From Oikopleura dioica (Eukaryota; Animalia; Chordata), in contig OU015568.1 in assembly GCA_907165135.1 (NCBI GenBank), positions 6,076,001 through 6,140,000 on the forward strand: a stretch of DNA of 64,000 nucleotides. The letters run 5' to 3'. Under the pieces are notes generated by a model. That model was not told where the DNA came from and ran no database searches. It worked only from the letters and a program-made list of their open reading frames with translations. This document shows, piece after piece, positions 3,491 to 64,000 of this stretch. A program made the position numbers and the translations under genes. The number at the start of each line of letters is the position of its first letter. Positions within the stretch are counted from its first letter, which is position 1.

Positions 3491-3506
3491 ATCGCACATA
3501 GCTATA

Positions 3507-4090: not shown

Positions 4091-4113
4091 ATAAGGAAAT
4101 ATTCAAAGCGTAC

Positions 4114-4392
4114 CTAACAAAAGATCGGAAAACTGTGCACCGCTCCAATTGTTCGCTGCATTCCACTCATTGACCCCCGATCCGGAACCGATTTCAACTG
4201 CTAGACCAGGCTTTTCTTTGGAAATAATCAACAAGCGCTACAAAACATACTACAATATCTGACTTCCTTGCCTAAACATTTATCCTGAAGTTCCTTTTCA
4301 ATGCCATCAAGAAAGACAAAAGAATCCTCAGAAGGCTCATACACAGAATCGGTATAATCATACCATGCTGAATAATCTGGCGTTGGACGCAT
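4114..4392 (-). pseudogene. N6AMT1: HemK2/N6AMT1 (Mtq2)-like methyltransferase fragment
   Basis: MRPTPDYSAWYDYTDSVYEPSEDSFVFLDGIEKEL, then AVEIGSGSGV (SAM motif I). The DINP segment is missing and no NPPY motif follows. Confidence 0.7.
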
Positions 4393-4643
4393 TCTTAATT
4401 TTTACCATATCAGTTTTATTGAAATTTACAAGTTGCCAGTATTTTAAATTTTCAGAATATCTTCTTTCATCCTTGATGAAATTTTCGGCAGTCCGAGTGA
4501 GCTCCCAATCTGATGCAATCTAAAATGGAAAAGACGTTAATTTAAAATCATAGTAAGGCGACAAAGGCAGTGAATAAAGAGTATAAAAGTGAGGTGATAA
4601 GTGAAAATGTGAACTATATACAGTGAGAAAGAAGGAAAGGGGT

Positions 4644-8184: not shown

Positions 8185-8455
8185 TTTCAATCCGATAGCG
8201 CACTGTCTGAACAAAAAATATGGGATCCTTTCTCTACTCTTTTCGTAGAGTCTGCCCTCAAATGGCGACGGCCGAGCAGCAAAAATGAGAAAAGGATTCT
8301 CGAAAAATGAGTATTTTCAAATGATGCTCCGACTCGCCTTGATCGCAGTCTTTCGATCAGATAAAAATGATCGTTTAGACATGGACGAATCAAAAAGTAG
8401 ATAGAATATTTTTCGACATGTTTTTGGATATTAAAATTGGCAGTAATCGGTTTTT

Positions 8456-25800: not shown

Positions 25801-28800
25801 CGATTCTAAGGATGGGAAAGACGATAAACAACCAGAATCCAAGAAGATAAATACGACTAAGAACGTTGAAGATTTCCAACCATTCGACGTTCACTTTTAC
25901 ACAGTGAAGAAGAAGCGACCAGGAAAGGCTTATTTCGCTTCGGCTACCATCATTACGGGCTCTAAAAGTTTTGACGTATCGATGGAAGTCGACAGCGGAG
26001 CCGAGTCCTCCTGTCTGTCCGCTGCTTACGTTCCCGACGAATTTCTCCAGATGCTGAAGCCCTGTCCCTTCAAGGTCACCGGTTTCAGCCCAAATATTCC
26101 CGCCGAGCAGCCGATGGGTATCCTTCCCTGCCGCTTATCATTCAATGGTGGCCCTGCGTTCTCCTTGAATCTCACCATCATGCCAGGCAGTAAATACCCA
26201 AGTCTACTGGGCCGCGATATACTAGAGAATGCGATGACGGACAGCTTCACAGTCGACAATAAGAATCGTACTCTCTCATTTTGCTACAACGAAGCCTTCA
26301 CACAAACTGAGACTCAAGTGGTGAAGCTGGACGGAGTGAAGCGGACCAAAATCAAGAAATACTTGACGACTAGATCAGCGGTCAAAGACAGCGATCGGTC
26401 CCGCACTCAACCACCACGAGAAGTCCCAAAGCTGGACGCGCCGAACAAGAACGCAGCCAGGTGCCCCATTCAGCTAGCGAAGCAAAAACTCGGAATAACC
26501 CTACCAGCAGACGCAGACCCGGGGCAAAAGAAGATGGTCGCCGAGCTGTGTTTGGAATTCGACGACAGATTCGGCTGCGACGGTCAAAAAATGGGTGAAT
26601 TCCCGTTCGAGATCGAAATCCCGACTGATGGTACGAGTCGAAACATCAGTCAACACCCGATTCCGCAAGCTTTTCATGGTCAGGTCAGCGATCACATCTC
26701 CGAACTGCTCGAAACGAAAATAATAGAAGAGATCAAAGACCAGAAAGGGTTTAACAGCCCGGTATTGCCTATTCCTAAGAAATCTGGGGAAATGCGCTTC
26801 TGCATCAACTACAAAAACAGCCTGAACAAATGCCTCTCCGACAAATCCGACCCTTACCATCTCCCAAGCATGGAGGATACGATCGCGAACATTGGACCGG
26901 GCAATAAGTTTTTCGCCACAGTTGATCTACGAAGTGGATATTGGCAGTGCCCTGTAAAGAAAAGCGACAGGTACAAGACTTCCTTCCAGTGGGGTGGGAA
27001 ATCTTACGCCTTCTGCAGACTACCATTCGGTTATCGATGCTCGGGGAATATATTCTCGCGCGTCGTAAACACAATTCTCGACTCAAGCCCCACCAGGAAA
27101 AAGATGCTTTCTTATATCGATGACATAGTGTGTTTTGGGAAGACTTTCAGCTGCTATTACAACACTCTCCGAAACCTATTCATCGCGCTCCGCAAGTTTA
27201 ACGCTAAACTCAAGGGCGAAAAGTGCTCTTTCCTACAATCCGAAGCTCACTTTTTGGGCCGAATCATCAACGAAGATGGAATCAAACCGGACCCTGCGCA
27301 AGTCTCCGCTCTTCGTCAGATGAAACCCCCACGCTCCCAAAAGGAGTTAGCTTCATTAATCGGGTCATTGAATTGGATCCGAGGTTTTCTAGAAACGAAA
27401 ATGGGCGAAGCTATTTCATCCGGTTGCTTCTCGAGCAGAATGAAGCCCATAAACGATGTTCGAAATTCGGCGAACGAAACAAATTGTTTCAAGTGGACCA
27501 AAGAAGCGGATTTGGCGCTCAAGGAAATTCAACGACGACTCTCCGAGACTCCAGTCATAAGTTTTCCTAACTTTGACGAGTCTTTTCATCTCTACACAGA
27601 CGCGAGCCTGTACGCAGCGGGTGGCGTCCTGCTACAAGAGTATGGCGGGAGAGTGCACCTAGTAAGCGCGATTTCCCACACCTTCAACAAAGCTGAAAGA
27701 AAATGGAACACTTCAGAAAAGGAAATGTTTAGCATTGTCTGGTGCTGCGAGCGACTGGAAAAGCTCCTGAAAGGTAGATTCTTTCAGATTCACACAGACC
27801 ACCGATCTTTGATCTTCCTACACAAAAAGAAGTTCAAGAATTCTAAAATAAGCCGATGGCAAAGCCGATTGGAAGAATTCGATTTTCACATTGTCTACAT
27901 CAAGGGATCAGAAAATCAATTCGCCGACTTTATGAGCCGCAGACCTGGCGAGGACGACAAATCACTTGGATACGACTCCGAGTTTCCCGTTGGTCGCGAG
28001 TACGAAATCGACAAGAATTCACCAGTACGTGTCTTCGTCCCTTTCTGGAACGAAAATCAGTTTCCGGAGAAAATCACTTTATCAGAGGTGAAGATACATA
28101 AGGTAAACGTCAAGGCTATCGCGGCGCCAATGGAGATTCCGTTGGTGTCAGCGAATTATAATAACATTCTGGACTATCAAAGGGAGGACTCTGCTCTGAG
28201 TGCAATCATCACTTTTCTGGAATCTGGTAAGGAGCCACTGGACATAAAATCGCTGGTGAAGGACTCCGACCACCGACAATCGTCTCTACTCAAGATGGAA
28301 AAAGCTCTGTTCCTGGATAACACTACCGGGTGCTTGATGTGTCAATTCAAATCTGGCGCGCGGGCGGTGGTACCGGAAGCGGTAAAAAGTCACTTTCTCT
28401 TTCTAGCTCACGACTTGTCCGGTCATCTGGGCGAGCCGCGGACTTTAGAGCGATTAGAGGACGTTTGGTGGCCTTCATTTCAAGACGATGTTTCTAACTA
28501 CGTCCACAGCTGCGTCCCTTGCCTACGCAGAAAAGGATCTGCTGGAACTCGTACCAAACCGCCACTTGGAACCCTTCGTCGTGGAAAAACAGCTGGCGAA
28601 TCGATTCAGATCGATTTCGCTTGTATGCCTCCCGCTGGCGGATTCAAGTATTATTTGGTGGTGGCGGACACTTTCTCTCGCTACACTTGGTGCATTCCGA
28701 CACGGTCCGACACTGCTATCTGCGCCGCAAAAGCGCTCATCTACAAGGTCTTCCTTCCCATGGATTTCTTGCCGAAACATCTACACAGTGACAGAGGTAC

Positions 28801-31196
28801 CCACTTCTGCGCAAGCGTGATTGACGAAATGTGTAAGCTTAACCAGATAAAACATACAATAAGTACCGCATTTCACCCTCAATCAAACGCTTTCGCAGAA
28901 AGAGCGAATCGGACTATCAAAAACAGTCTATTCTGCATGGTCAACTCATCTTCCGGTCGAAAAACTTGGGCCGACTGCGTTCCCCACGTGATGCGCGCGC
29001 TCAATAGTGTGAAAAACAAAAGCACGAAAATTTCACCGCGAGAAGTTTGGTTTGGCCGAAAAAGTACTTTCACCCACTCTACTGGCGCAGAAATGACAGC
29101 GGAAACACCTCAGGTGTTTGGTCTCAATGTGGGAGCTTTAGCGAAATCGGCGGAAGCCATTGTGAAAACTGCGATGGAAGCTGCTGACCGAGCCATGGAG
29201 CACAGGCTGAAAAACGAGCCTAAGCCGAGACCAATCCCCGCTGGCGCTGTCGTGTACATTAAGCGAGAAAACCTGACCGACGCTAAAAGCAAGAAGGAAC
29301 GCTGGGTAGGTCCCCTGAAAGCCGTTTCGAGCAACGACTGGGTCGTCATGGTCGAAGATAAAAAAGGACAACGTGATTTCATCCATCGAGAACACGTGGT
29401 TCACGCCGCAGAACGAAATCACGACTTACGCTGGATTGATTACTACGAGGCCGAGTACGTATTCCCACATTTAACCGAAATCGTTAAGTCGAAAGTCCCA
29501 CAAAAATCGCCTGTTCCTACTTCCAAACCGATGGAAAAGTCCGGGTCGAAGTCGCATGGGGGGAGGAAATCTTCTCAGGTCGCGTCGACTCCGATGGTTG
29601 CTATGGAAAAACCGCCAAGATCATCTCTATCACCTATTTTGGAAAGTAGACGCCGATTGGACATGGAAAATCTGGGAGATACAACCGCTACATCTATTTT
29701 GGACTCGTCGGTAGCTCCAGCCGAGCCGTCAGATCGCTGGTACTCTGGTGGTACTCTTTATGAAACTGCCGAGGACATGTCAGCTGATGCTACAGTGATT
29801 TCGGAGGTTGCTGCGCCCGACAATAGCCATATGTCAGTCGATAAACAAAATTCAACAGTAGTTGAGGGCTCAGCAACTGAAAACAGCAAGAAAAGAACCC
29901 GTCCAAAGTCTTCACCAGATCGTCAATACTCAGCCGGCGCCGATCCGAATGCGACTTTAACCGAAGTTGGAGCAGCTCATCTCCCGAAACATACAAAACG
30001 AGCACACCGTGAAACGAGGCCCGTCGAACCTCTAAACATCGGCACAAACTCGGGTCAGTCATACGACTAAGCGCAAGTACTGCCCCACTCAGGTCCCCTA
30101 TTCATCGACCGGGGCCTGAAAAGGTACGGAAATTATCACAGTTTACCGTCGCCGACGTATTTTGAGTTCTTCTACATGTGCAGCTACTCCTTCATGTCAT
30201 CACCGCTCGGACATCACGAAAACTTCGCATCTGATTCAAGCTTTTTCCCAAAAAAGGGTTTTTTAACGCGAATCAGACTGCCTCGACGTTTCGAACCTGC
30301 CATGTTACTCATCTTACGCTTATACTCCTGCAAAAATCACACACTTTGGCCTTAGAGGACGTTTCAGTCTCATGGGGGGTATTGGGATCTTAGATTCGTT
30401 AGACTCCCTCGTCCCCTAAGGTCACTTGCTTATCTAGATCGAGCTTTGCTCGGTCGCCGCCGTGTATTTCTCTTCATTCGGTAATTCACGCAGTTCGTGA
30501 ATTAACCTCTATTTTACTCCAGCTCGAAATACAGACGTCAAAGATACTTTACTCGTTTTCTTCACTCGTCCAGATATAGAGAGCAGGCAAACTACGCTAG
30601 AAGTGGGAGATTCAGCAGAAGCTAGGATCCCTTCACTCTTTAACTGGCTTTCAAAATATCAGTCTACCCCGCTAATATTGACCATTCAGGAGAAAATATT
30701 TTTTTAAAGCCTCTTTCCTATAACCAGCTTGACAGGCCAGATCTAAGATTTCCTTGTCGCGAATGAGCTCATATTTTAGATACTTCAAATCGTTATCGAC
30801 ATTTTGCAAGGCTTCGGAAAGCGTTTCCAAATTCACAACCGGGCGAAAAACCGTCTCCATCAAAAGCTGGACGCCTTCTTTTAGCGCTCCTCGTTTGATG
30901 CTCAGCGCAAAGATCGTCGCTTCCTGGTCTGTCTGGCAGTCGCAAATTCCACCGTTCATTTCCAAAAACTCTCTGACTTGCGTTCTCGAAGCAAAAGAAT
31001 CTAGGGTCGCTCCAAAGGCCATTTTCTCGTCCAAGTGGGCGACGCCGTTTGGAATATCGACTGTATTCCGTGCCCCAGCGCGCAGAATAATCGCAATTGT
31101 GCAGTAATTTCCGTGAAGAGCAGATCGAGAGTAGAGATTCACATCGGAAGCTTTTGCTGAAAGAATTCTGTTTTCTAGGGATGAAAATTTAACCAT
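22840..31196 (-). CDS. PMPCA: Mitochondrial processing peptidase alpha-like, copy 2, split by LTR element 1
   Basis: 5' exon 30718-31196 (RAGARN..GVAHLDEKMAF..NGGICDCQ) continues after the element as RGNTIGLKR, then WEAP..LGGGRSFESGGAGKGL. The 3' end is uncertain. Confidence 0.78.
24147..24402 (+). repeat. 5' LTR, copy 1
   Basis: TATTGGGATC...GATCCCTTCA; direct repeat of 30380-30635. Confidence 0.95.
24917..30070 (+). CDS. Gag-pol polyprotein (PR-RT-RH-IN), 1717 aa
   Basis: DSG protease, YIDD RT, DAS/TDH RNase H, HHCC (HDLSGH..CVPC) and DDE integrase in Ty3/gypsy order; single ORF. Confidence 0.97.
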   Translation: MAANKSLLETVTEIRSINDRVNYLEEQVRNDESLKPSLEPLITESRVKLEQLSTTLLTCELDQGKDSTNATMREEAWVATTWSRHVQDLPKLDAACNTSFNTFLGRADIYHRAYVRDRPSREQPFIAAVYSHFDLNIERSLGTEFLNCQDWKSAKALLEKSFAAKSHYLLKLSEVFDVEYDHSKPFAHYTANVLQKMNEAKQATLNSYRQEKSADAGVDEIFDIFSTMMLYLNLRKEEPDVFNAILPSLSKVYDINELCRLAQSTRQNRVDSATVSQHFNRNKNKKKKNAKRASNDSKDGKDDKQPESKKINTTKNVEDFQPFDVHFYTVKKKRPGKAYFASATIITGSKSFDVSMEVDSGAESSCLSAAYVPDEFLQMLKPCPFKVTGFSPNIPAEQPMGILPCRLSFNGGPAFSLNLTIMPGSKYPSLLGRDILENAMTDSFTVDNKNRTLSFCYNEAFTQTETQVVKLDGVKRTKIKKYLTTRSAVKDSDRSRTQPPREVPKLDAPNKNAARCPIQLAKQKLGITLPADADPGQKKMVAELCLEFDDRFGCDGQKMGEFPFEIEIPTDGTSRNISQHPIPQAFHGQVSDHISELLETKIIEEIKDQKGFNSPVLPIPKKSGEMRFCINYKNSLNKCLSDKSDPYHLPSMEDTIANIGPGNKFFATVDLRSGYWQCPVKKSDRYKTSFQWGGKSYAFCRLPFGYRCSGNIFSRVVNTILDSSPTRKKMLSYIDDIVCFGKTFSCYYNTLRNLFIALRKFNAKLKGEKCSFLQSEAHFLGRIINEDGIKPDPAQVSALRQMKPPRSQKELASLIGSLNWIRGFLETKMGEAISSGCFSSRMKPINDVRNSANETNCFKWTKEADLALKEIQRRLSETPVISFPNFDESFHLYTDASLYAAGGVLLQEYGGRVHLVSAISHTFNKAERKWNTSEKEMFSIVWCCERLEKLLKGRFFQIHTDHRSLIFLHKKKFKNSKISRWQSRLEEFDFHIVYIKGSENQFADFMSRRPGEDDKSLGYDSEFPVGREYEIDKNSPVRVFVPFWNENQFPEKITLSEVKIHKVNVKAIAAPMEIPLVSANYNNILDYQREDSALSAIITFLESGKEPLDIKSLVKDSDHRQSSLLKMEKALFLDNTTGCLMCQFKSGARAVVPEAVKSHFLFLAHDLSGHLGEPRTLERLEDVWWPSFQDDVSNYVHSCVPCLRRKGSAGTRTKPPLGTLRRGKTAGESIQIDFACMPPAGGFKYYLVVADTFSRYTWCIPTRSDTAICAAKALIYKVFLPMDFLPKHLHSDRGTHFCASVIDEMCKLNQIKHTISTAFHPQSNAFAERANRTIKNSLFCMVNSSSGRKTWADCVPHVMRALNSVKNKSTKISPREVWFGRKSTFTHSTGAEMTAETPQVFGLNVGALAKSAEAIVKTAMEAADRAMEHRLKNEPKPRPIPAGAVVYIKRENLTDAKSKKERWVGPLKAVSSNDWVVMVEDKKGQRDFIHREHVVHAAERNHDLRWIDYYEAEYVFPHLTEIVKSKVPQKSPVPTSKPMEKSGSKSHGGRKSSQVASTPMVAMEKPPRSSLSPILESRRRLDMENLGDTTATSILDSSVAPAEPSDRWYSGGTLYETAEDMSADATVISEVAAPDNSHMSVDKQNSTVVEGSATENSKKRTRPKSSPDRQYSAGADPNATLTEVGAAHLPKHTKRAHRETRPVEPLNIGTNSGQSYD
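30380..30635 (+). repeat. 3' LTR, copy 1
   Basis: Follows the PPT and is followed by TSD CTCT. Confidence 0.95.
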
Positions 31197-32751: not shown

Positions 32752-35700
32752 ATGGCGGCGAACAAATCACTGCTAGAAACCGTCACCGAAATAAGAAGCA
32801 TAAACGATCGAGTAAACTACCTCGAAGAACAAGTGCGAAATGACGAATCACTAAAGCCAAGCCTAGAGCCCTTGATCACAGAAAGCAGAGTAAAATTAGA
32901 ACAGCTCAGTACAACGCTTCTTACCTGCGAGCTCGATCAAGGAAAAGACTCTACGAATGCGACAATGAGAGAAGAAGCATGGGTGGCCACTACCTGGTCT
33001 CGTCACGTCCAAGACTTGCCGAAGCTGGACGCCGCATGCAACACATCTTTCAACACCTTCTTGGGCAGAGCCGACATTTATCACCGCGCCTACGTCCGCG
33101 ACAGACCTTCACGTGAACAGCCTTTCATCGCAGCAGTGTACAGCCACTTCGACTTGAACATCGAACGCTCACTTGGAACCGAATTTCTGAATTGTCAAGA
33201 CTGGAAATCGGCCAAGGCGCTGCTAGAGAAATCATTCGCCGCGAAGAGTCACTACTTACTGAAGCTAAGCGAAGTTTTCGACGTCGAATACGACCATTCG
33301 AAGCCGTTTGCACACTACACCGCCAACGTCTTGCAAAAGATGAACGAGGCGAAGCAAGCGACTTTGAACTCTTACCGACAAGAGAAGTCAGCCGACGCCG
33401 GGGTCGATGAAATATTTGACATATTCTCGACGATGATGCTGTACTTGAATCTTAGGAAAGAAGAACCAGACGTTTTCAACGCAATCCTTCCAAGCCTATC
33501 AAAAGTTTACGATATCAACGAACTCTGCCGTCTCGCCCAATCCACAAGACAGAATCGAGTTGACAGCGCGACCGTCTCCCAGCACTTCAACAGAAATAAG
33601 AACAAAAAGAAGAAGAATGCTAAGCGCGCCAGCAACGATTCTAAGGATGGGAAAGACGATAAACAACCAGAATCCAAGAAGATAAATACGACTAAGAACG
33701 TTGAAGATTTCCAACCATTCGACGTTCACTTTTACACAGTGAAGAAGAAGCGACCAGGAAAGGCTTATTTCGCTTCGGCTACCATCATTACGGGCTCTAA
33801 AAGTTTTGACGTATCGATGGAAGTCGACAGCGGAGCCGAGTCCTCCTGTCTGTCCGCTGCTTACGTTCCCGACGAATTTCTCCAGATGCTGAAGCCCTGT
33901 CCCTTCAAGGTCACCGGTTTCAGCCCAAATATTCCCGCCGAGCAGCCGATGGGTATCCTTCCCTGCCGCTTATCATTCAATGGTGGCCCTGCATTCTCCC
34001 TGAATCTCACCATTATGCCAGGCAGTAAATACCCAAGTCTACTGGGCCGCGATATACTAGAGAATGCGATGACGGACAGCTTCACAGTCGACAATAAGAA
34101 TCGTACTCTCTCATTTTGCTACAACGAAGCCTTCACACAAACTGAGACTCAAGTGGTGAAGCTGGACGGAGTGAAGCGGACCAAAATCAAGAAATACTTG
34201 ACTACTAGATCAGCGGTCAAGGATAGCGATCGATCCCGCACTCAACCGCCACCAAAAGTCCCAAAGCTGGACGCACCTAACAAGAACGCAGCCAGGTGCC
34301 CCATTCAGCTAGCGAAGCAAAAACTCGGAATTACCCTACCAGCAAACGCCGACCCGGGGCAAAAGAAGGTGGTCGCCGAGCTGTGTTTGGATTTCGACGA
34401 CAGATTCGGCTGCGACGGTCAAAAAATGGGTGAATTCCCATTCGAGATCGAAATCCCGACTGATGGTACGAGTCGAAACATCAGTCAACACCCTATTCCG
34501 CAAGCTTTTCATGGCCAGGTCACTGATCACATCTCCGAACTGCTCGATACGAAAATAATAGAAGAGATCAAGGACCAGAAAGGGTTTAATAGCCCCGTTC
34601 TGCCAATCCCTAAGAAATCTGGGGAAATGCGCTTCTGCATCAACTACAAGAACAGCTTGAACAAATGCCTCTCCGACAAATCCGACCCATATCATCTTCC
34701 GAGCATGGAGGATACGATCGCGAACATTGGACCGGGCAACAAGTATTTCGCCACAGTTGATTTGCGGAGCGGATATTGGCAGTGCCCTATTAAGAAAAGC
34801 GATAGGTATAAGACTTCCTTCCAGTGGGGTGGGAAATCTTACGCCTTCTGCAGATTACCTTTCGGTTATCGATGCTCGGGGAATATATTCTCGCGCGTCG
34901 TAAACACGATTCTCGACTCAAGCCCCACCAGGAAGAAGATGCTTTCTTATATCGATGACATAGTATGTTTTGGGAAGTCTTTCAGCTGCTATTACAACAC
35001 TCTCCGAAACCTATTCATCGCGCTCCGCAAGTTTAACGCTAAACTCAAGGGCGAAAAGTGCTCTTTCCTACAATCAGAAGCTCACTTTTTGGGCCGAATC
35101 ATCAACGAAGAAGGAATCAAACCGGACCCTGCGCAAGTCTCCGCCCTTCGTCAGATGAAACCCCCACGCTCCCAAAAGGAGTTAGCTTCATTAATCGGGT
35201 CATTGAATTGGATCCGAGGTTTTCTAGAAACAAAAATGGGCGAAGCTATTTCATCCGGTTGCTTCTCGAGCAGAATGAAACCCATAAACGATGTTCGAAA
35301 TTCGGCGAACGAAACAAATTGTTTCAAGTGGACCAAAGAAGCGGATTTGGCGCTCAAGGAAATTCAACGACGACTCTCCGAGACTCCTGTCATAAGCTTT
35401 CCTAACTTTGACGAGTCTTTTCACCTCTACACAGACGCGAGCCTGTACGCAGCGGGTGGTGTTCTGCTACAAGAGTATGGCGGGAGAGTGCACCTAGTAA
35501 GCGCGATTTCCCACACCTTCAACAAAGCTGAAAGAAAATGGAACACTTCAGAAAAGGAAATGTTTAGCATTGTCTGGTGCTGCGAGCGACTGGAAAAGCT
35601 CCTGAAAGGTAGATTCTTTCAGATTCACACAGACCACAGATCTTTGATCTTCCTACACAAAAAGAAGTTCAAGAATTCTAAAATAAGCCGATGGCAAAGC

Positions 35701-37905
35701 CGATTGGAAGAATTCGATTTTCACATTGTCTACATCAAGGGATCAGAAAATCAATTCGCCGATTTTATGAGCCGCAGACCTGGCGAGGACGACAAATCAC
35801 TTGGATACGACTCTGAGTTTCCCGTTGGTCGCGAGTACGAAATCGACAAGAATTCACCAGTACGTGTCTTCGTCCCTTTCTGGAACGAAAATCAGTTTCC
35901 GGAGAAAATCACTTTATCAGAGGTGAAGATACATAAGGTAAACGTCAAGGCTATCGCGGCGCCAATGGAGATTCCGTTGGTGTCAGCGAATTATAATAAC
36001 ATTCTGGACTATCAAAGGGAGGACTCTGCTCTGAGTGCAATCATCACTTTTCTGGAATCTGGTAAGGAGCCACTGGACATAAAATCGCTGGTGAAGGACT
36101 CCGACCACCGACAATCGTCTCTACTCAAGATGGAAAAAGCTCTGTTCCTGGATAACACTACCGGGTGCTTGATGTGTCAATTCAAATCTGGCGCGCGGGC
36201 GGTGGTACCGGAAGCGGTAAAAAGTCACTTTCTCTTTCTAGCTCACGACTTGTCCGGTCATCTGGGCGAGCCGCGGACTTTAGAGCGATTAGAGGACGTT
36301 TGGTGGCCTTCATTTCAAGACGATGTTTCTAACTACGTCCACAGCTGCGTCCCTTGCCTACGCAGAAAAGGATCTGCTGGAACTCGTACCAAACCGCCAC
36401 TTGGAACCCTTCGTCGTGGAAAAACAGCTGGCGAATCGATTCAGATCGATTTCGCTTGTATGCCTCCCGCTGGCGGATTCAAGTATTATTTGGTGGTGGC
36501 GGACACTTTCTCTCGCTACACTTGGTGCATTCCGACGCGGTCCGACACTGCTATCTGCGCTGCAAAAGCGCTCATCTACAAGGTCTTCCTTCCCATGGAT
36601 TTCTTGCCGAAACATCTACACAGTGACAGAGGTACCCACTTCTGCGCAAGCGTGATTGACGAAATGTGTAAGCTTAACCAGATAAAACATACAATAAGTA
36701 CCGCATTTCACCCTCAATCAAACGCTTTCGCAGAAAGAGCGAATCGGACTATCAAAAACAGTCTATTCTGCATGGTCAACTCATCTTCCGGTCGAAAAAC
36801 TTGGGCCGACTGCGTTCCCCACGTGATGCGCGCGCTCAATAGTGTGAAAAACAAAAGCACGAAAATTTCACCGCGAGAAGTTTGGTTTGGCCGAAAAAGT
36901 ACTTTCACCCACTCTACTGGCGCAGAAATGACAGCGGAAACACCTCAGGTGTTTGGTCTCAATGTTGGAGCTTTAGCGAAATCGGCGGAAGCCATTGTGA
37001 AAACTGCGATGGAAGCTGCTGACCGAGCCATGGAGCACAGGCTGAAAAACGAGCCTAAGCCGAGACCAATCCCCGCTGGCGCTGTCGTGTACATTAAGCG
37101 AGAAAACCTGACCGACGCTAAAAGCAAGAAGGAACGCTGGGTAGGTCCCCTGAAAGCCGTTTCGAGCAACGACTGGGTCGTCATGGTCGAAGATAAAAAA
37201 GGACAACGTGATTTCATCCATCGAGAACACGTGGTTCACGCCGCAGAACGAAATCACGACTTACGCTGGATTGATTACTACGAGGCCGAGTACGTATTCC
37301 CACATTTAACCGAAATCGTTAAGTCGAAAGTCCCACAAAAATCGCCTGTTCCTACTTCCAAACCGATGGAAAAGTCCGGGTCGAAGTCGCATGGGGGGAG
37401 GAAATCTTCTCAGGTCGCGTCGACTCCGATGGTTGCTATGGAAAAACCGCCAAGATCATCTCTATCACCTATTTTGGAAAGTAGACGCCGATTGGACATG
37501 GAAAATCTGGGAGATACAACCGCTACATCTATTTTGGACTCGTCGGTAGCTCCAGCCGAGCCGTCAGATCGCTGGTACTCTGGTGGTACTCTTTATGAAA
37601 CTGCCGAGGACATGTCAGCTGATGCTACAGTGATTTCGGAGGTTGCTGCGCCCGACAATAGCCATATGTCAGTCGATAAACAAAATTCAACAGTAGTTGA
37701 GGGCTCAGCAACTGAAAACAGCAAGAAAAGAACCCGTCCAAAGTCTTCACCAGATCGTCAATACTCAGCCGGCGCCGATCCGAATGCGACTTTAACCGAA
37801 GTTGGAGCAGCTCATCTCCCGAAACATACAAAACGAGCACACCGTGAAACGAGGCCCGTCGAACCTCTAAACATCGGCACAAACTCGGGTCAGTCATACG
37901 ACTAA
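32752..37905 (+). CDS. Gag-pol polyprotein, 1717 aa, copy 2
   Basis: Same motifs as copy 1; 11 amino-acid differences, all in the PR-RT linker and RT. Confidence 0.97.
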   Translation: MAANKSLLETVTEIRSINDRVNYLEEQVRNDESLKPSLEPLITESRVKLEQLSTTLLTCELDQGKDSTNATMREEAWVATTWSRHVQDLPKLDAACNTSFNTFLGRADIYHRAYVRDRPSREQPFIAAVYSHFDLNIERSLGTEFLNCQDWKSAKALLEKSFAAKSHYLLKLSEVFDVEYDHSKPFAHYTANVLQKMNEAKQATLNSYRQEKSADAGVDEIFDIFSTMMLYLNLRKEEPDVFNAILPSLSKVYDINELCRLAQSTRQNRVDSATVSQHFNRNKNKKKKNAKRASNDSKDGKDDKQPESKKINTTKNVEDFQPFDVHFYTVKKKRPGKAYFASATIITGSKSFDVSMEVDSGAESSCLSAAYVPDEFLQMLKPCPFKVTGFSPNIPAEQPMGILPCRLSFNGGPAFSLNLTIMPGSKYPSLLGRDILENAMTDSFTVDNKNRTLSFCYNEAFTQTETQVVKLDGVKRTKIKKYLTTRSAVKDSDRSRTQPPPKVPKLDAPNKNAARCPIQLAKQKLGITLPANADPGQKKVVAELCLDFDDRFGCDGQKMGEFPFEIEIPTDGTSRNISQHPIPQAFHGQVTDHISELLDTKIIEEIKDQKGFNSPVLPIPKKSGEMRFCINYKNSLNKCLSDKSDPYHLPSMEDTIANIGPGNKYFATVDLRSGYWQCPIKKSDRYKTSFQWGGKSYAFCRLPFGYRCSGNIFSRVVNTILDSSPTRKKMLSYIDDIVCFGKSFSCYYNTLRNLFIALRKFNAKLKGEKCSFLQSEAHFLGRIINEEGIKPDPAQVSALRQMKPPRSQKELASLIGSLNWIRGFLETKMGEAISSGCFSSRMKPINDVRNSANETNCFKWTKEADLALKEIQRRLSETPVISFPNFDESFHLYTDASLYAAGGVLLQEYGGRVHLVSAISHTFNKAERKWNTSEKEMFSIVWCCERLEKLLKGRFFQIHTDHRSLIFLHKKKFKNSKISRWQSRLEEFDFHIVYIKGSENQFADFMSRRPGEDDKSLGYDSEFPVGREYEIDKNSPVRVFVPFWNENQFPEKITLSEVKIHKVNVKAIAAPMEIPLVSANYNNILDYQREDSALSAIITFLESGKEPLDIKSLVKDSDHRQSSLLKMEKALFLDNTTGCLMCQFKSGARAVVPEAVKSHFLFLAHDLSGHLGEPRTLERLEDVWWPSFQDDVSNYVHSCVPCLRRKGSAGTRTKPPLGTLRRGKTAGESIQIDFACMPPAGGFKYYLVVADTFSRYTWCIPTRSDTAICAAKALIYKVFLPMDFLPKHLHSDRGTHFCASVIDEMCKLNQIKHTISTAFHPQSNAFAERANRTIKNSLFCMVNSSSGRKTWADCVPHVMRALNSVKNKSTKISPREVWFGRKSTFTHSTGAEMTAETPQVFGLNVGALAKSAEAIVKTAMEAADRAMEHRLKNEPKPRPIPAGAVVYIKRENLTDAKSKKERWVGPLKAVSSNDWVVMVEDKKGQRDFIHREHVVHAAERNHDLRWIDYYEAEYVFPHLTEIVKSKVPQKSPVPTSKPMEKSGSKSHGGRKSSQVASTPMVAMEKPPRSSLSPILESRRRLDMENLGDTTATSILDSSVAPAEPSDRWYSGGTLYETAEDMSADATVISEVAAPDNSHMSVDKQNSTVVEGSATENSKKRTRPKSSPDRQYSAGADPNATLTEVGAAHLPKHTKRAHRETRPVEPLNIGTNSGQSYD

Positions 37906-55154: not shown

Positions 55155-56075
55155 ATGGATCTGAACTACCGCGAATCGGACGAAGAAGTCGTCAAGATCG
55201 AGCCCAACTCTTCGATGAGCATGGACGGCCAAGACATGACATTCGGCCTCGGAACCGGCCTCGACCAGCTTCCCTTCGGAGCCATTCCCAGTCAACAAGC
55301 AGTCGCGCAGCCAGCACCCCGAACCCCAGCCAACCCTACTGGCGGCAAGAAAGTGTCTGGGCGAGTAGAACGAGCTGCCAGAATCGCGGAATTATTCGAC
55401 GCTGGATCTCCTCGAGTCCGACTTGACCACTTCGTCTACAAAGGTATTTAAAAAGCGGGTGAATGCGTCTCATTTTGACGGCATTCTTGAGCCGACCGAG
55501 ACATTGAAAATTAGTAAGAAGAGTAGCAAAAGTTGCGTAGATGAGTTTCATAATCGATCGGCTCAGGACTGCGCGATTCTTCCTTTTTTTGATGATGAAA
55601 ATGAAAAGGTGGGGCGGGTCGGCCCGCACGCAACAGAAACCGCACTCCGCGGCTTAAAACCATTGAATTAGTTTTTCGAATTGAAATGGCTCTATTCCTG
55701 CCCCTTTTTAATGAAAAAAAAAATGTTCTGAAGCGACAAAGTAGGCAGTCGTAGGCTCGGCAACCTGTGTAAAAACTGAGTCAGGTCCTGGATCGTAAAT
55801 GAAAAGCTTTTTAGAACCCTGACTCAGGTTTTCTGCACAGGTCGCCAAGCCCAGTCCGTCCGGGCTCACCCTCCCCATTATTTCGTTTTTCGATAAAATC
55901 GGTGACGAGCTTAGTTTTAAAGATAACTCAAAAGAAGTAAGCTAATGTTAAATTCAGTCGATGACAATCCGGTCTTCGACGCTGCTCGAGTCTTTCTGGA
56001 CGGCGAGTGTCAAAACCTTGTCTATTGCTGTGACCCGAAATGCGCCGAAAAACCCACCTTCAAACGATTTTTTAG
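55155..56075 (+). CDS. Constant 5' coding exons (55155-55443, 55958-56075) of a BED/C2H2-like zinc-finger gene
   Basis: MDLNYRESDEEVVKIEP..HFVYK-V|DDNPVFDAARVFLDGECQNLVYCCDPKCAEKPTFKRFF-AG|GCAAG; GC-type donor in phase 2, matching the phase of the downstream units. Confidence 0.75.
55754..55851. repeat. ~100-bp imperfect inverted repeat in intron
   Basis: GGCTCGGCAACCTGTGTAAAAACTGAGTCAGG / CCTGACTCAGGTTTTCTGCACAGGTCGCCAAGCC. Confidence 0.75.
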
Positions 56076-56079
56076 GCAA

Positions 56080-56097
56080 GGGTCACAATCATCCCGC
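56080..56097 (+). promoter_or_regulatory. Putative docking site for mutually exclusive splicing
   Basis: GGGTCACAATCATCCCGC; its reverse complement GCGGGATGATTGTGACCC matches the motif upstream of the array acceptors. Confidence 0.8.
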
Positions 56098-56461
56098 AAA
56101 AATCAGGTTTTTAAAACCGTTTTATTTTTATGTTTCTCCTTTATTACTAACCTCGTCGTTTTATTTCGAAAAAAGACAAAAAGAACAGATGATTTCATTA
56201 TTTTTATTTATCGAATTTTTTTATTCATTCAAATCACCGTGATTTTTTTAATTCAAAATTTGTGCTGGTAAACTCTTTCGCTTGTGCTGGCAAGTTTCTT
56301 TCATTTTTCGTGTTTCGAGCTTCGAAAAAGCTCCAAAAACGAAGAAGAAATTTACCAGTACAAGCAAAATCGAAGAGGAACCAGCTGAAATGCCAAAAAT
56401 CGAGCTTTGAGTCCATAATCGTTGAAAAAAAGGTCCATTTTTTTGTGGCCCTTTTGACCAG

Positions 56462-59400
56462 TGGTCTGCGAGATAAAACACCTCACAAGGGTAATTTTCT
56501 GCGACACCACGTCAATCGCCATTCACAGTTCAAAATTCAAGCCCTGGGATTTATTCAAAAAGGATTCTAGTGATCCTTCGGCAAGTGCATTCAAACGCGG
56601 CCCGGGGAACTTGTCCTCCCAGCGATTGTACCTTCATAAGTTCACGATGCTCACGCATCATACTCGCCACCATCAAGGGTCGGGATTGTCTGCTTTTCTG
56701 GCTCTGTCCTTTTTTCACGAGTATTGTGACCCTCCCTTACTGCCCCTTCAAGCCCGGCGCTGGCTTGTATAAAAAGCGCTACTATCTCAAAAACTATCTT
56801 CTCGCGGCGCATCACAACTGTAAACATCTCAAAATTAGATCGATCTGTAACAATTTCGAGTTGGGATTAGACTCGACTTCTTCCCTTTTTGTGACCCGGA
56901 TCAAGGGCGACCGATAGTTCGAAGTTGAAGCGGCATCACCAGAGAAACCATTTTTCGCAAATGGAGAAACTCTTAGGCCCGGCTTTGTTTTTCACTTTTC
57001 ATGATTGTGTCCCTTCGCTAAAGGGGCCAGGAATCCATGGCTCAGACTAAATTCGAAGCTGAGCACAACATTGAGGCTCGGCGAATGTACATTCATCGAG
57101 GGAGCATGCTCCGCCATCACAACCGGCAGCACTCGCTCGACAGTCAAATTAGACTCAGTGAGATTTTTCTAGGCCTGGGATTTTGAAGTAGGATGATTTT
57201 GATCCTTTCTAGTGGCTTTTCGAGCCCTCTGGCCAAATACTTTCACAAGAGGAACATGATCGGCCACCACAATTTCAATCATCACGGGCGAGAAATACTC
57301 GGATAGGGATTGACTTGATCTTTGTTTAATTTTGTGATCCTCCAAAGTGGGTTTTGTCAAACAACGCTCAGCAAAAGTAAAAAGTTCTCTTTTAAAAAAG
57401 GGAACTTTTTAATTCACCACGACAGAAATCATTTTCGAAAAGATCAAAAGATTCTTCGTAAATTGGCAGGAACGGGTTTTTCTAGTGGGCTTGGTTTTTT
57501 GTACTTTGTGATCCTTTGAAGTGGCTACGATCAGACAAAAAAAGATGATCAGCCAGAACAAGTTCCATTGCCACAAATGGATGTTTATGAAACACCACAA
57601 CAGAAACCACCTCCCGAAAATTTCAGAAACGGATTTTATGTGTTTTGTGACCCTAGATTAGAGGATATAGAGCAGACAATGTAGCGGCAATGACACTTAA
57701 AAAATCGACAATGCTCGGCCACCACCAGGCCAACCACCGATTTATATCCGGTAGAGCTACTGTGGCGAAGCCCAGACTCGTTTTGGGATTTCAGTTTTTT
57801 AGAAAGAACGTATAATTTATTGTGACCCGGAATCAGAGGATACCGAGCTGACAAAGTTTCAAAATTCATGTTTCGAAAAGCGACAATGCTTGCCCACCAC
57901 GAGTCCCATCACCGACTTGTTCCCGGGAGGGGTGTTGGGCGGCCCCGTTCGAATTTCGTTTTGGGATCGCAGTTTTTGATACAATGATTTTTTGATTGAA
58001 TCATATTTTTATTTGAAGCTTTATTCTTAGTTTACTTTGTGACCCAGAAGTAGAGGCTATAGAACTGACAGCAGTTCCATGTTGATCAAAAAGTCCTACA
58101 TGCTCAGCCACCACAAATGCAACCACCGATCTGTGCCCGGCAGGGCCACTGTGGCGAAAAGATTTGTTGTTTCGGGATTTCAGATCTTCGTATTCATTTC
58201 TTTTGAGTACTCGTTATCAATGAACTCTTCCAAGTTCAAATTGTGACCCAGAATTAGACCATATAGAACGCGCGGTAATAGACTGAAGCTCAGCAGGTGG
58301 GACATGGTCGGCCACCATGAGCGGAATCACTCGGAACACGCCGGACTCTCGAAAAAGCAAATCTTGATATGGGATTTCAGATTTCATATTCTTTTCTTTT
58401 TGTGACCCAAATTAGAGGATACAGAACTAACAACATAAAAATGATGCTCAAAAAGTCGAAAATGATCAGCCATCATCAATGTAATCACGGATCTGTCTAC
58501 GGATCTCGCTGGACTGTCGAGAAAACGGATTTACTCCCGTGTAACAATTTTAGGGTAGGGTGGGTTGCGTCATTTCAGCGCTGCGCTCCCGGTACAATAC
58601 CTACCACACCGCCCGCAGCAAGCGCCTTTCTCAAAAAGCGCCATCTCTATTGGATTTTACGCTCGCTGCGGGCAGTGTGGTAGGTATTGTACCGGGAGCG
58701 CAGCGCTGAAATGACGCAACCCACCCTACCCTAAAATTGTTACAAGGGAGTAGTTTTGGGATTGTTAAACCTTTTGAGCTTGTTTTCTGTGACTCTTAGA
58801 AAAGCGGACTTCAGAAAGAAATGTCTTACTTTCACAAAACTAAGATGATGGCCCATCATCGAAATCAGCACAAAGATAAAGTATCGGATTTCAAAATTTC
58901 TTGATCATCTTTTTCGTTGAGTATTTTTCTCATTATTTTGTGACTCTTTCAAAAGTGGATATCAAAAAGGACGGAAAAAAGGCAGCGTATATTTTCATAG
59001 ATTCACGATGATGCGGCATCATAACAATTGCCACGACAATAATAGTGGACTTAACTGGCTGGGAAAAAAACTCGTCGCGTCAGAAGTTTGGGATTAGGAA
59101 CTTTGAATTATTTTCATGTGAAATACATTTGAGCGTTTCTTTTTTGTGACTCTTGGAAAAGCGGATACGAGTCAAAGAAAAATATCTTATATCTCCACAA
59201 AATTGGTTTTACTGGACATCATAAATACCACCACAAGAAAGATAAATCGATTAAATCAGTTATGGGTTCGAATATTTTAAATGTTTTCTTTCCATGATAA
59301 ATTTTTGAATTATCATCAGAATCATTATTTTTCCGGGAGTTTTTTAAAATGAATTTGTGACTCAATCAAAGCGGATATCAGAAAAGGCCAGACCATTCGC

Positions 59401-62400
59401 AATTTTACATTCACAAATATCGAATGCTTCTGCATCACAAAAACCACACCAAGAATCAATCGGCGCCGACAGTTTCGGATTTTACTTGATAAATTTTTTT
59501 TTCAATAAGAAAACTCATTTTTGTGACTCTTGAAAAAGCGGTTATCGAGGCATGGAAAACGGCGTTTTCAAATTTTTGCTGCACAAAAAAACAATGCTTC
59601 GGCATCATAAAATTAACCACGATTATTTTTATTCGCCACCAGTGAGGGATTAGAGACGAGTGACCCTTTCGTAGCGGCTGTTCGATCGACCTTCGATCGA
59701 AATCGTCGAAAATTTTCATCCACAAGCAGAAAATGCTTGGCCACCACAAGAACAATCACACTTTCAAAAAAACAGGGGATCGCTTGGGTTGACCAACGAG
59801 GGATTGGTCGCAGAGAATATTTGTTTAAAAGTTTTAAATTGAGTAGAAGTCAGTATCAATCCTTTTCTGACTTGATTTGTGACTCTATTGAAGTGGATAT
59901 CAGAAAAAGATTCTTCGATCGAAATCATCGAAAATTATCATCCACAAACAGAAAATGATTTGCCACCATAAAAATCATCATACGCCGAAGAACTATCAAA
60001 GTAGTTTTCTTGCCCAAGAAGGGAATCGGGCGTAACATGATCAGTTGTCTTTCTCTTACCCTAGAATCAATGATAATTTATAAATCAACTCATACGTGAC
60101 CCTTGACCTAAGAGGGGCTCGATATATCAAGCCCGCGAAGGATAAAATGATGCGCCACCATGAAAACAATCATTTAAATTACAGTGATAGATTTCCATTT
60201 GCAGGAAGGGATGAATTTTCTTGTGACCTTCTTCAGTGGCTATCGAACGGACTGTAAATCGCTTAGTTTGAATCGTTATGCTATGCTTGCTCATAACAGC
60301 AGAAATCATAAGATTTCGACAAAACAAGTGCGGATTTTATGAAGAATTTTTAAAAAATTATATAATATATTGTGATCCGATAAGGGGCTATGACCCAACA
60401 ACCGCTTGCGGAATGAAAAAACATAATATGATGGGCCACCACAATCGTAATCACGGTAGAAAAATGGTTGAATTGAACATTGATTTCAAAGCAAAGGGAT
60501 TTTTATAGAATCTCATCATCTTTTCGTGATATATTGTGACTCTTGAAAGCGCGGTAGATACGAGTAGGCGTGGAACACCTGGTAGAAATCCTTATGTTCA
60601 AAAGCAGAAAATGTTGCTTCATCATAAGCACAAGCACGAAAGCATAAATGCTAATTGGAGAGTTCAAGTTCGGGATTATTTTTGTGACTCTTATAGAGGA
60701 ATTTACTACAAAGCAATTCATAAGTGTTCGATGATGCAGCATCACAGAAATAACCATTTGAAAATAAATGGCTGCTGCCATTCAGGCTTTCGGGTTTTAT
60801 AGCTTTTCAATTTTTTTCTGTGGTCTTTTTGTGACTCTTTCCAGAGGAATAGACAACAACAGAACACTCACAATTCACAAGAGTTCGATGCTAAAGCATC
60901 ACAGATGGAATCACGTGAAAGTTAACTCAGGCTTTTGGGGTTTTAAGATTTTCAAGAGGAGATTTTTTGTGGTGTTTTTGTGACTCTTGCTAGAGGAATC
61001 TTCGGCAGCGCGAAATTTACACTCAAGAAAAGTGCGATGCTACAGCATCACAGATGCAATCACGCGAAACTTAATTCAGGCTTTTTGGGGTTTAGGATTT
61101 TCCAAAGAAAGCGGTTTTCATCGAAGACAATCATTTTGGGTTTCATACCAGGTAGTTTTCCAAAGTGAAAGATTTTTTCTGTGGTCTTTTTGTGACTCTT
61201 TCAAGAGGAATTTGCAACAACAAAACTCTCTCAATTCACAAGAGTACGATGCTAAAGCATCACCGATGTAATCATGTGAAAGTAACTTCAGGCTTTTGGG
61301 GTTTATGATTTCTCGGAGTGGGCAATTTTTTCTGTGGTGTATTGCGACCCTTGCTAGAGGAATATTCAATCGTTCAATTCACAAATTTTCGATGATGCAG
61401 CATCACAATAATAATCATCACGGGAGAAATAAATCAGGTTTTCGGGTTTTAGGATTTTTTGAAATCTTTTTTTTATGATGTGACCCAGTACAGTCCCTAC
61501 ATTAGATCTTCGATTCACAAGGCAACAATGCTGAGGCATCATAAAGCTAATCATTCCTCCCAAAAAGCAGCGAGAGCTCAAACAGGAAAGCGGGATATTG
61601 TGATCTTTGGTAGAGGCTTCCAGCGTGGTTCCAGGGGAATCAATTCGATTCATAAATGCACTATGTTGAAGCATCATGGTTACAACCATGCGACAACAAA
61701 ATCAGGCCTTTTGGGTTTAGCTATTTCTTCTGAATTCGGGATATTGTGATCTTTGACAGTGGTTTTCAGCGTTCCAGCCATAAGAGGAAAACTTACATTC
61801 ACAAGCAGACGATGCTCAGTCATCATGACCGTGAGCACGGGAAAGCTTTGGAGAAAACACTTTTTAACTGAAATCATGATTTTCGTGACCCTTTTAAGTG
61901 GATTGACTAAGAGACGAGAGCATGAGCCTTTAGGTCCTCATCGAAAGTCGATGCTTAGACATTCTGACACTCATCACGGTACTAATTTTCAACGTAAAGG
62001 CGAGGATTTTTTGAAAATGACGAGACTTTTCGGCCCAATTTTAATAGACGGGATTCTTCGAGACTGAAATGATTGTGACCCAAATTTTTAGTGGAATGGA
62101 GCGCAGAAGAGCTTTCAATACTTTGAAGCCTCAACGCTCAAAGTTCTATCAGCACTCGGATAATAATCATGGCACTTATTATCGGTTCTTACGGGGCGTA
62201 GGAACGGGATTTAACTATTGTGACTCTTTTCAAAGCGGAATGAGGCCAAAAGGGCAATATAAAGCTGATAAAAGTAACATGGAAGTTCACAAGCGTAATT
62301 TCAATTCGCACTCGGACCATAACCACGGAACGAATATTGTTCAGTCCGAAATGTTTGCTAGATTAGAGCGGGATATGAAGAATTAATCTTTCCTTCTTAT

Positions 62401-64000
62401 TGTGGCCCTTTTTCAAAGTGGAATGAGACCCAATGGCACTACAATTCATACATCCGCTATGAGACAGCATCATAAGTGGAATCATTTTTCGAAATTGGAA
62501 AAAGGCTTTTGGGCTTTTATAATGAGATATTTTTGTGTACCCTTTCGAAAGCGGAATGAGACCGAGCGGAAAAGATATTCACAAGCACAACTTCAATTCG
62601 CACCATTTTCATAACCATGGAACGAATATGATGAAGTCCAAAGTATCCGGCAAATTAGAGCGGGATAGAATCTCAGTCTTGAAAAACACCATTTTCTTAC
62701 TCATATCATCTCATATTCATATCATCACTGTCTCCTGATTTCGATAAATCTCGATTGTGACCCCAACTAGTGGCTACGCGGGTGGTTATGAAAACCTTCA
62801 TAACAAGAAACTGAATTTCCACAAAAGAACTATGGTCACCCATCACAGGAATAATCATAAATCAGCCGGGGATTGTATTTGTGAAATTTTTGCGAGATGT
62901 TTTGTGACTCTGAAAGTCAATCTGCTTGCCGATTTATCCATAAGGGGAGCTTGAATCGACACCACAAAACTCATCATTTGTCGAAAGAATGGGAATTTAG
63001 ACTTGATTGTGACCCATTTGATAGTGGCATTTCTAAAAAAGAGATTTGCCTCAAGAAACAAATCTCGATTGAAAGTGAGAAAAAATATGGCTATTACATC
63101 CACAATAAATCTTTTGTTGGACATCATACCATCCATCATTTGCCAAAAAAAGAATAAAGTCGGGGTTGATTTTTCATTTTTTTTTATTTCGAGGTTGATT
63201 GTGATCCATTGTTAGCGGACTGCATTTCAGAAACAGAGCAATTTACAACAACAAAAAACAATTTTTGCAGCATCACAAAAAACACGGCCATTTTGAAAAA
63301 GGGATTGAAAGTAATTGTGACCTTGTAAAGTGGCGTGGACGTAAGAACAAAATCTAAAATAACCAAAAAACTTCACATGTCTTCGCATCACATCGCTCAT
63401 CATTCGCAAAATACAAGGAAAAAAGCAAAGGGATGAATTTTCAATTCATTGTGATCCTCTAAAGTTCCCCGTCGACTCAAAAACTAGACTTGCATCACTA
63501 CCGCCAGCATATGAAAAAAGTAATGACCAGAGCTCAGATGGGCGAGCTTCTCGGCCCGCGTCTGAAAGCTTTGATTCGCGAAGGGAAGGGGGATGAAATT
63601 GTATTTTGTTAAACGATTGTGGCCCTTTCTAGCGCTATTGATGTTCGATGTAAGAATCCAGCGATAAATGCGAAGCATACGCTCTCCCATCATGTCGCTA
63701 GTCACCTGAATATTCAAAAAATTGGAAAAGCCAACACGGCAATTTTGCTAGAAATTGTTCGAGCCTCTGAAGCGTATCAAGAGTTGGGATGGCTTTTTTC
63801 GCTATCTCTTGTTTTTTTAATTGCGGATTTGATTTTTAAAATTGTGATCCTTTGTCTAGTGGAGTTGATGTAAGAAAGAAAAACCCAATAATCCATCACC
63901 ATAGTTTCCTCTGCCATCACCTGATAAATCACCGTCGAGTTTATATCGCAAGAGGTACTAATGTCGAAACTTTGCGTTTTATGTTGCAAGGGAGGGATTA
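56462..64000 (+). CDS. Array of at least 45 candidate mutually exclusive exons, each encoding a His half of a zinc finger
   Basis: Unit = TTGTGAYYY, ~5-9 nt, AG | N GGN TAY.. (xGY..HKxxMxxHHxxNH..). First exon bases: 56462, 56586, 56753, 56906, 57024, 57213, 57348, 57522, 57662, 57837, 58054, 58258, 58416, 58805, 58956, 59162, 59372, 59539, 59675, 59894, 60113, 60237, 60385, 60550, 60697, 60845, 60994, 61206, 61358, 61494, 61614, 61760, 61899, 62092, 62236, 62419, 62552, 62771, 62917, 63025, 63216, 63331, 63465, 63633, 63860. Confidence 0.85.
58534..58750. mobile_element. 217-bp Tc1/mariner-type (Stowaway-like) MITE with TA TSD inside array exon 13
   Basis: TA|CTCCC..GGGAG|TA with ~85-bp near-perfect TIRs; removing it restores KTDLVLG, like sibling exons ending RLVLG and NFVLG. 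Confidence 0.92.

Follow-up and report, generated by a model that had tools for sequence, protein, structure and literature searches.

A tandem array of alternative 3' exons in Oikopleura dioica and a probable BED-like finger with a swapped reading helix

The end of a 64-kb stretch of Oikopleura dioica contig OU015568.1 (the window, whose positions serve as coordinates throughout) is filled with short, similar reading frames that share a histidine motif, which raises the question of what a single gene does with so many versions of one small exon. We found that these frames are the variable exons of one gene on the + strand, in which two constant coding exons are followed by at least 45 alternative 3' exons. 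The original prediction had taken the variable exons to diversify a DNA-recognition helix. The explanation at which we arrived is a BED-like finger that receives its reading helix by splicing, with isoforms of differing DNA specificity, and we regard it as reasonably probable when taken as a whole. Within this explanation the gene would be small and previously unannotated, and its protein of ~170-200 residues would have VKIE in its N-terminal part, then a linker and a single BED-like zinc-finger domain.

Gene structure and the exon array

Constant coding exon 1 (55155..55443, +) begins with the ATG at 55155, ends at a phase-1 GT donor at 55444 and encodes an N-terminal acidic stretch, a low-complexity linker and, after these, the domain's first helix and first strand. 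Constant exon 2 (55958..56075, +) encodes the second and third strands and a Cys knuckle. Its 3' end, ..TTT TTT AG in phase 2, is followed by GCAAGGGTCACAATCATCCC, which holds a GC donor and a docking site. The variable exon array (56462..64000, +) lies downstream. Taking TTGTGAYCC, the AG that follows it and the frame as guides to its units, we counted 45 tandem units at distances of ~105-390 bp; the array continues past the end of the window, hence their number is at least 45. Per unit the order is GGGAT .. TTGTGAYCC (the selector) .. AG, exon and stop codon, with an unconserved tail of 5-71 aa. Units 1-15 start at 56462, 56586, 56743, 56906, 57024, 57213, 57348, 57535, 57662, 57837, 58048, 58252, 58416, 58805 and 58956, units 16-30 at 59162, 59372, 59539, 59675, 59894, 60113, 60237, 60385, 60550, 60697, 60845, 60994, 61206, 61358 and 61494, and units 31-45 at 61614, 61760, 61899, 62092, 62236, 62419, 62552, 62771, 62917, 63025, 63216, 63331, 63465, 63633 and 63860, all on the + strand. 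Each unit is an in-phase 3' exon that starts with [S/R]-G-[Y/I/M/F/L], continues with a loop and then reaches HKxxMxxHHxxNH. In + frames HHxxxH is found at 39 places from 56505 to 63915, and elsewhere in the window once on the + and once on the - strand.

Splicing of this gene was seen in RNA. The 2999-nt JGI contig L001, from a related lineage, encodes a protein of 196 aa (P0009) and is spliced from exon 1 to exon 2 to a variable exon, with a junction (556|557) that corresponds exactly to window 56075|56743. Past the chosen exon the contig runs on for at least 15 more units with no splicing. Read coverage of exons 1 and 2, at 88-95% identity, was obtained from three oligo-dT RNA-seq runs (X4-X6) of a diverged lineage, in which 21, 39 and 34 reads crossed the exon 1/exon 2 joint (55443|55958). 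At 56075, 39, 57 and 44 reads of these runs continued into sequence unlike the window. The continuations start with (T/A)GG and reach a mutual consensus agreement of only 0.47-0.52, compared with 0.88-1.0 at other loose ends, and exon 2 is therefore joined to many different partners. The choice of one exon per mRNA is supported, and since exon 2 has only one donor, exactly one exon would be used.

Every unit terminates in a stop codon, and splicing onto a downstream constant exon, the hallmark of an internal-cassette arrangement, was not found. Polyadenylation after each unit was also considered and deemed unlikely, because the 7.6 kb of array contain 4 AATAAA where ~6 are expected by chance. 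From the unit stops, the few AATAAA and the readthrough in L001 we conclude that the units are alternative 3' acceptors of one long terminal region and not internal cassettes.

How the exon is selected is suggested by the sequence directly after the exon 2 donor. This docking site (56076..56104, +) has the reverse complement GGGAT..TTGTGACCCTTGC, and GGGAT and TTGTGAYCC are both portions of that complement. Using RNAduplex, we obtained a mean of -22.5 kcal/mol for the docking site against the 50 nt upstream of the 45 acceptors and -9.4 for exon-body controls (Wilcoxon p 5.5e-9). As in Dscam, a single docking site has a complementary selector ahead of every variable exon, here in 45 units. An alternative use of GGGAT, as a non-canonical donor after each exon, was rejected, since the element belongs to the docking complement and L001 has no donor use after a variable exon. 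Exon choice is probably made by docking-selector pairing: the docking site would pair with the selector before one acceptor, the single exon 2 donor (56075) would be joined to that one of the at least 45 tandem 3' exons, and the remaining downstream array would stay in the RNA as untranslated sequence.

The acceptors agree with this arrangement. With the two bases AG carried over from exon 2, the first AG after the selector gives the correct phase and a frame open into the His motif in 40 of the 45 units (binomial p 1.4e-14), and in three more an in-phase AG lies 5 nt further on; altogether, 43/45 units have an open frame from an in-phase acceptor through the His pair. These open frames bear on a reading in which only the first few units are real exons and most are decaying duplicates, left as repeat debris in the 3' untranslated region. 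The sole fully assembled spliced RNA uses unit 3, and the units at 56743 (non-AG acceptor) and 57535 (frame shift) look damaged, as such a reading would have it. However, decay does not fit the 43 open frames, a ratio of non-synonymous to synonymous rates (dN/dS) of 0.016 in unit 21 (60113), the heterogeneous reads at the 56075 junction and the selectors retained throughout the array, and we consider it very improbable that most units are debris.

Three units or unit combinations deserve separate description. Variable unit 3 (56743..56845, +) is the one whose orthologue is spliced to exon 2 in the RNA encoding P0009, and its dN/dS against L001 is 0.11; in the window, TG stands instead of AG before the junction used by the L001 RNA (56741-56743). 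In the window lineage unit 3 is either a dead exon or one with a non-AG acceptor. In the unit at 57535 (57506-57628) the usual AG leads into a frame without the His motif, and an in-frame AG follows 13 nt further, past an A run, so that this is probably a frameshifted or shifted-acceptor unit. Finally, a 190-aa open reading frame (ORF) from a closer lineage, P0016, spans units 2, 3, 4 and 6, of which the last two are fused to each other, which suggests a deletion polymorphism within the array.

The variable face and selection on the units

To compare the variable exons, we made per-position counts over the 45 units, anchored on the first His (position 0). This His is present in 45/45 units, His +1 in 40/45 and His +5 in 44/45, while position +4 is Asn in 26/45 and His in 9. 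Position -3 is Met in 30/45 units, Phe in 9 and Leu in 5; Lys occupies -6 in 32/45 (Arg in 6), His occupies -7 in 27/45 (Lys in 9), and -8 is Ile, Leu or Phe. A conserved HHxxxH, a hydrophobic residue (usually Met) three positions before it and a preceding HK or KK had all been predicted, and the counts bear this out. Likewise, the seven tetrapeptides named in the prediction, KGNF, KFTM, RGSM, KRNM, KSTM, KQKM and KHNM, were recovered at -6..-3 of the units at 56462, 56586, 57024, 57213, 57662, 59675 and 60385, respectively. The loop, too, varies strongly in length as predicted: 10-33 residues (median 20) separate the splice junction from the first His, hence 3-26 residues precede the HK. At conserved residues synonymous codons are mixed, with His CAC/CAT at ~1:1, Lys AAA/AAG at 16:16 and six codons for Leu, and conservation is therefore on the protein and not on the DNA.

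Variation is equally well defined. Entropy exceeds 3 bits at each of -5, -4, -1, +2 and +3 and is high at no other position. Along -8..+5 it is helically periodic, with a peak at 90-100 degrees (permutation p 0.015), which places the variable residues on one helical face. All 45 variable peptides carry a net positive charge, with a mean of +4.2 over 26 residues.

The window was compared with L001 and with L003, the Bergen reference genome sequence from GCA_000209535.1. Variable unit 5 (57024..57150, +) is an old orthologous unit in three lineages (its L003 orthologue lies at 3492), and between window and L001 it shows 21.5 synonymous differences at 24.3 sites, which are saturated, and 5.5 non-synonymous ones. 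Variable unit 21 (60113..60191, +) is orthologous in three lineages as well, with the dN/dS of 0.016 against L001 given above, and its residues -4 and -1 are the same in all three. Pooling three orthologous units, we counted 19 non-synonymous differences at 215.5 sites and 42 synonymous ones at 54.5 sites between window and L001. With synonymous sites at saturation and dN/dS far below 1, the aligned sequences indicate purifying selection on the orthologous units. The four clearest reciprocal-best pairs with L001 (at 557, 862, 1781 and 2804) agree at -5, -4 and -1 in 12/12 cases, and over the variable face identity is 52% between reciprocal-best orthologues versus 11% between paralogue pairs. 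Old units thus keep their own face residues across lineages, which argues for a unit-specific function. Among nearest paralogue units, the variable face has a dN of 0.50 and the scaffold one of 0.13.

The same data can be read in terms of redundancy, with an array grown by unequal crossing-over, an exposed face that drifts, and functionally equivalent exons. Copy number indeed differs greatly between lineages, with at least 45 units in the window vs ~13 in the Bergen reference. The paralogue dN/dS on the variable face is ~0.5 and not >1, and the tails past the last His are unconserved; both would fit redundant isoforms. However, drift would hardly leave orthologues with their own residues at -5, -4 and -1 in 12/12 cases despite saturated synonymous sites, or produce the gap between 52% and 11% identity, and we judge redundancy of the isoforms to be improbable.

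In the reference sequence L003 exon 1 of the array gene lies near 2510-2814, exon 2 near 2950-3075 and the ~13 units between 3.4 and 9.5 kb, and the interval 2500-9600 includes two unit-free stretches of ~0.7 and 2.8 kb. Exons are 78-95% identical between window and reference, and the window lineage is diverged from the reference. In the part of the L003 annotation examined no gene is called for the array gene, and we found no publication describing it.

Exon 2 evolves differently. Between window and L001 its amino acids are identical, with 0 non-synonymous and 8 synonymous changes, and its dS is only 0.45 while the variable exons are saturated; a constraint at the nucleotide level is therefore indicated. 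The DNA of the knuckle codons contains the word TGTGACCC, which is the selector core. One possibility is that the selectors are remnants of knuckle sequence that was duplicated; another is pairing of exon 2 with its own docking site.

Identity of the domain

Protein analyses were done on the natural spliced P0009 of the related lineage, on exon pieces and on paralogues. A full HMMER scan with P0009:64-170 recovered lineage variants together with four distant paralogues, P0017-P0020, at 26-29% identity over ~90 residues, two of which are titled "unnamed protein product [Oikopleura dioica]". For homologues P0001-P0011 the identity is 64-76%. Word-index protein searches and the full HMMER scan returned Oikopleura-type sequences only, and did not place the family outside larvaceans; searches of the ESM Atlas by features and by shape gave weak, unrelated rows only.

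The paralogues show what the array gene has divided. In them the domain is contiguous: the same helix, strands and three Cys are followed by P-H-K-Y-S-V-R-R-H-H-E-Q-x-H (HKxxVxxHHxxxH). Hence the array exons supply the C-terminal third of a domain that already existed. The gene of paralogue P0020 lies in L003 directly downstream of the reference array gene, is separate with its own ATG, and has introns at the same two places; consequently, the array is younger than the intron dividing the finger. The C-terminal 100 residues of P0017-P0020 form a well-conserved region without a Pfam match, which is entirely missing from the array isoforms.

Exon 2 encodes three Cys, one in the strand preceding the knuckle and two in the C-C-D-P-K-C knuckle itself. 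The knuckle codons (56026..56043, +) supply the presumed Cys zinc ligands, and these Cys are invariant in paralogues P0017-P0020. AlphaFold2 models of an isoform (predicted local distance difference test, pLDDT, 69.5; predicted template modelling score, pTM, 0.61) and of a paralogue domain (pLDDT 67.8) share the order helix, three strands, knuckle, loop or hairpin, and a helix over -6..+4. In an exhaustive VIA alignment against 48,161 chains the Hermes transposase's BED domain (8eb5_A) ranked first for both models (Z 4.5 and 4.4, root mean square deviation 3.2 A, 69/74 residues; Foldseek E 0.95), followed by full-length Hermes (8edg_A) at rank 2. This weak match spans the whole domain and recurs in both models. 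The His pair is Hx4H, inside the BED range of Hx3-5[H/C], and the hydrophobic residue at -3 stands as in the BED motif T-S-x-L-x-x-H.

Several results weigh against a BED-like finger of diversified specificity. Pfam-A hmmscan with E up to 10 returned nothing for P0009, P0009:97-170 or the exon pieces, including zf-BED and zf-C2H2, and the paralogues P0017-P0020 had no zf-BED or other Pfam match at E up to 1 or 10. A sequence profile search of the PDB gave chance matches only (E >1), and Foldseek against the PDB gave nothing below E 0.1 for either model. Mean pLDDT is only 68-70, 4/5 models per run were poor, and the VIA Z of 4.4-4.5 is below the level that the tool itself deems reliable. The Cys pair is Cx4C (or Cx3C) instead of Cx2C, and 20-43 residues separate the last Cys from the first His, unlike in BED or C2H2 fingers. 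At the level of RNA, no read of X4-X6 matched a variable exon of the window at >=88% identity, in a lineage that is diverged. Finally, testing the variable face for positive selection gave a negative or underpowered result, with paralogue dN/dS at ~0.5 and dS near saturation.

Membership in zf-BED or C2H2 therefore cannot be claimed, given hidden Markov models (HMMs) without a match, the Cx4C pair and the long loop. The domain has neither the Cx2-4C x12 Hx3-5H spacing nor the HMM match of a classical C2H2 finger (PF00096), and the zf-BED HMM (PF02892) does not recognise it. A domesticated hAT transposase would carry an RNase-H-like core or a hAT dimerisation domain, which the isoforms lack as they stop 5-71 residues past the finger; Pfam gave no match for the 510-aa paralogue P0020, and no tool confirmed a hAT resemblance of the paralogue segment after the finger. 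The Pfam search and structure prediction proposed with the original prediction thus gave divided answers, no zf-BED or C2H2 match on one side and a best, weak structural match to Hermes BED on the other. The description as a BED-like finger with a swapped reading helix is well supported.

In Hermes the BED zinc ligands are C51, C54, H71 and C73, the helix T65-R70 sits deep in the major groove, and bases are contacted by S66, N67 and R70, together with Q64 and main-chain atoms of R63 and T65 (PMC10368747). Counted from His71, S66, N67 and R70 fall at -5, -4 and -1, Q64 at -7, and L68 at -3, the place of the conserved hydrophobic residue. The three hypervariable positions of the array before the His are exactly -5, -4 and -1, with the conserved Met at -3, and the same three are the canonical C2H2 positions 2, 3 and 6. 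In solved BED and C2H2 complexes the corresponding helix face lies in the major groove, and therefore the isoforms most likely bind different short DNA sequences.

The variable face might instead recognise proteins or RNA, so that the library, with domain and splicing as described, would diversify the choice of partner. This would accord with the weak matches to the BED fold and with dsRNA-binding domains, which Foldseek also lists at equally weak scores and which have a similar helix-three-strand-helix order. One finger, moreover, reads only ~4 bp, and a preprint indicates that single C2H2 fingers can mediate dimerisation (bioRxiv 10.1101/2025.09.04.674178). Set against this are the coincidence of the variable positions with exactly the base-reading ones of Hermes BED and C2H2, the basic character of all variable peptides, and a best structural match that is a DNA-bound BED domain. 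Recognition of proteins or RNA is in our view rather unlikely, albeit the most serious of the competing readings.

The proposed diversification of a recognition helix is partly supported: helix and His ligands are encoded by the variable exons, the Cys by exon 2, and the one variable face matches the base-reading positions of Hermes and C2H2; strict BED or C2H2 family membership does not hold. Exons 1 and 2 supply the constant part of the domain, namely helix, three strands and Cys knuckle. The variable exon adds a loop of variable length, an alpha-helix and both His ligands, so that the finger is completed across the splice junction. The face of the helix toward zinc and core is fixed, and the opposite face (-5, -4, -1, +2, +3) differs from exon to exon. 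We regard the gene structure, splicing across the finger, the pattern of conservation and purifying selection as shown, and infer that the finger would bind zinc and that isoforms would recognise DNA with distinct specificities. Only tentatively do we extend this to the claim that each of the at least 45 isoforms binds a different short DNA motif, which would make one gene with one promoter the source of a repertoire of sequence-specific BED-type factors, their specificity set within a single domain by RNA-pairing-guided exon choice.

Further potential metal ligands were noted. The second His of the HH doublet, present in 40/45 units of the window, is C, S, A or D in several L001 and L003 units; His -7 and a third invariant Cys, located in the strand that leads to the knuckle, could act as additional ligands, and a second metal site is possible.

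The constant part contains the predicted VKIE motif, which we located by sequence reading at residues 13-16 (55191..55202, +). VKIE fits the psi-K-x-E consensus and is a candidate SUMO-type motif; it is retained in 10/11 lineage homologues, with VKVE in the remaining one, and the distant paralogues have VK[S/P/I]E within an acidic context.

Elsewhere in the window, two near-identical ORFs of 1717 aa (24917-30070 and 32752-37905, +), 7.8 kb apart, have features of protease, reverse transcriptase and integrase and, judged by these, look like tandem copies of a long terminal repeat retrotransposon. That the finger isoforms recognise transposon ends, as had been suggested as one possibility, is speculation.

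Comparison with known systems

The closest relatives in fold would be the BED fingers of hAT transposases and ZBED factors (Hermes, PDB 8eb5/8edg). In common with them, the array gene encodes a domain of ~75-95 residues in which an N-terminal helix and strands are followed by a Cys knuckle and by a helix at the C-terminus with the hydrophobic -3 and His ligands (Hx4H being within the BED range), and its variable positions are the base-reading S66, N67 and R70 of Hermes. Unlike them, it lacks an HMM match, carries Cx4C where they have Cx2C, separates knuckle and helix by a far longer loop, and has an HH doublet and no transposase body, and its finger is split by an intron, with the helix chosen by splicing. 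Should the isoforms differ in DNA specificity, this is natural helix-grafting on a BED-type finger, and the ~45 scaffold-matched variants would offer a readable recognition code.

KRAB-ZNF genes and other poly-zinc-finger expansions, with which the array had been likened, also diversify the base-reading positions of a conserved scaffold and show a fast turnover of copy number between lineages. The analogy is conceptual only. Those expansions proceed by duplication of genes and fingers and put many fingers into each protein, whereas the array gene has one finger per protein and gains its diversity by splicing. A compact genome would in this way obtain a transcription-factor repertoire from ~10 kb of DNA, which could serve genome defence or a cell-identity code.

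To our knowledge, splice-diversified zinc-finger genes exchange whole fingers, and docking/selector arrays serve arthropod receptors by diversifying their Ig domains. Drosophila lola, mod(mdg4) and fruitless resemble the array gene in having constant 5' exons and many alternative 3' exons with their own stops that provide differing zinc-finger surfaces. They swap whole fingers (C2H2 pairs or FLYWCH) on a BTB domain and have 4-31 exons, partly joined by trans-splicing. In contrast, Pfam finds no BTB or other domain in the constant part of the array gene, and the variable exon has no Cys ligands, which are in exon 2; only that half of a single finger which holds the helix and the His is exchanged, at least 45 exons lie ~150 bp apart, and exon choice probably involves docking/selector pairing. 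The splice junction passes through one finger, so that a fixed scaffold would receive one of dozens of reading helices, and this would make the gene the first in which a zinc finger exchanges its recognition helix.

The exon 6 cluster of arthropod Dscam1 shares the docking site by the constant exon, a selector before every variable exon and dozens of tandem variants. Dscam exons, however, are internal cassettes that encode Ig half-domains of a surface receptor and need an exclusivity mechanism, while the array gene is a chordate gene for a small zinc-finger protein, with terminal exons whose exclusivity would follow from the single donor. If confirmed, RNA-pairing-guided exon choice would be extended to chordates, with the first docking/selector array of Dscam scale in this group. 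As we reconstruct it, the mechanism combines features of lola/mod(mdg4) and of Dscam exon 6 and differs from both.

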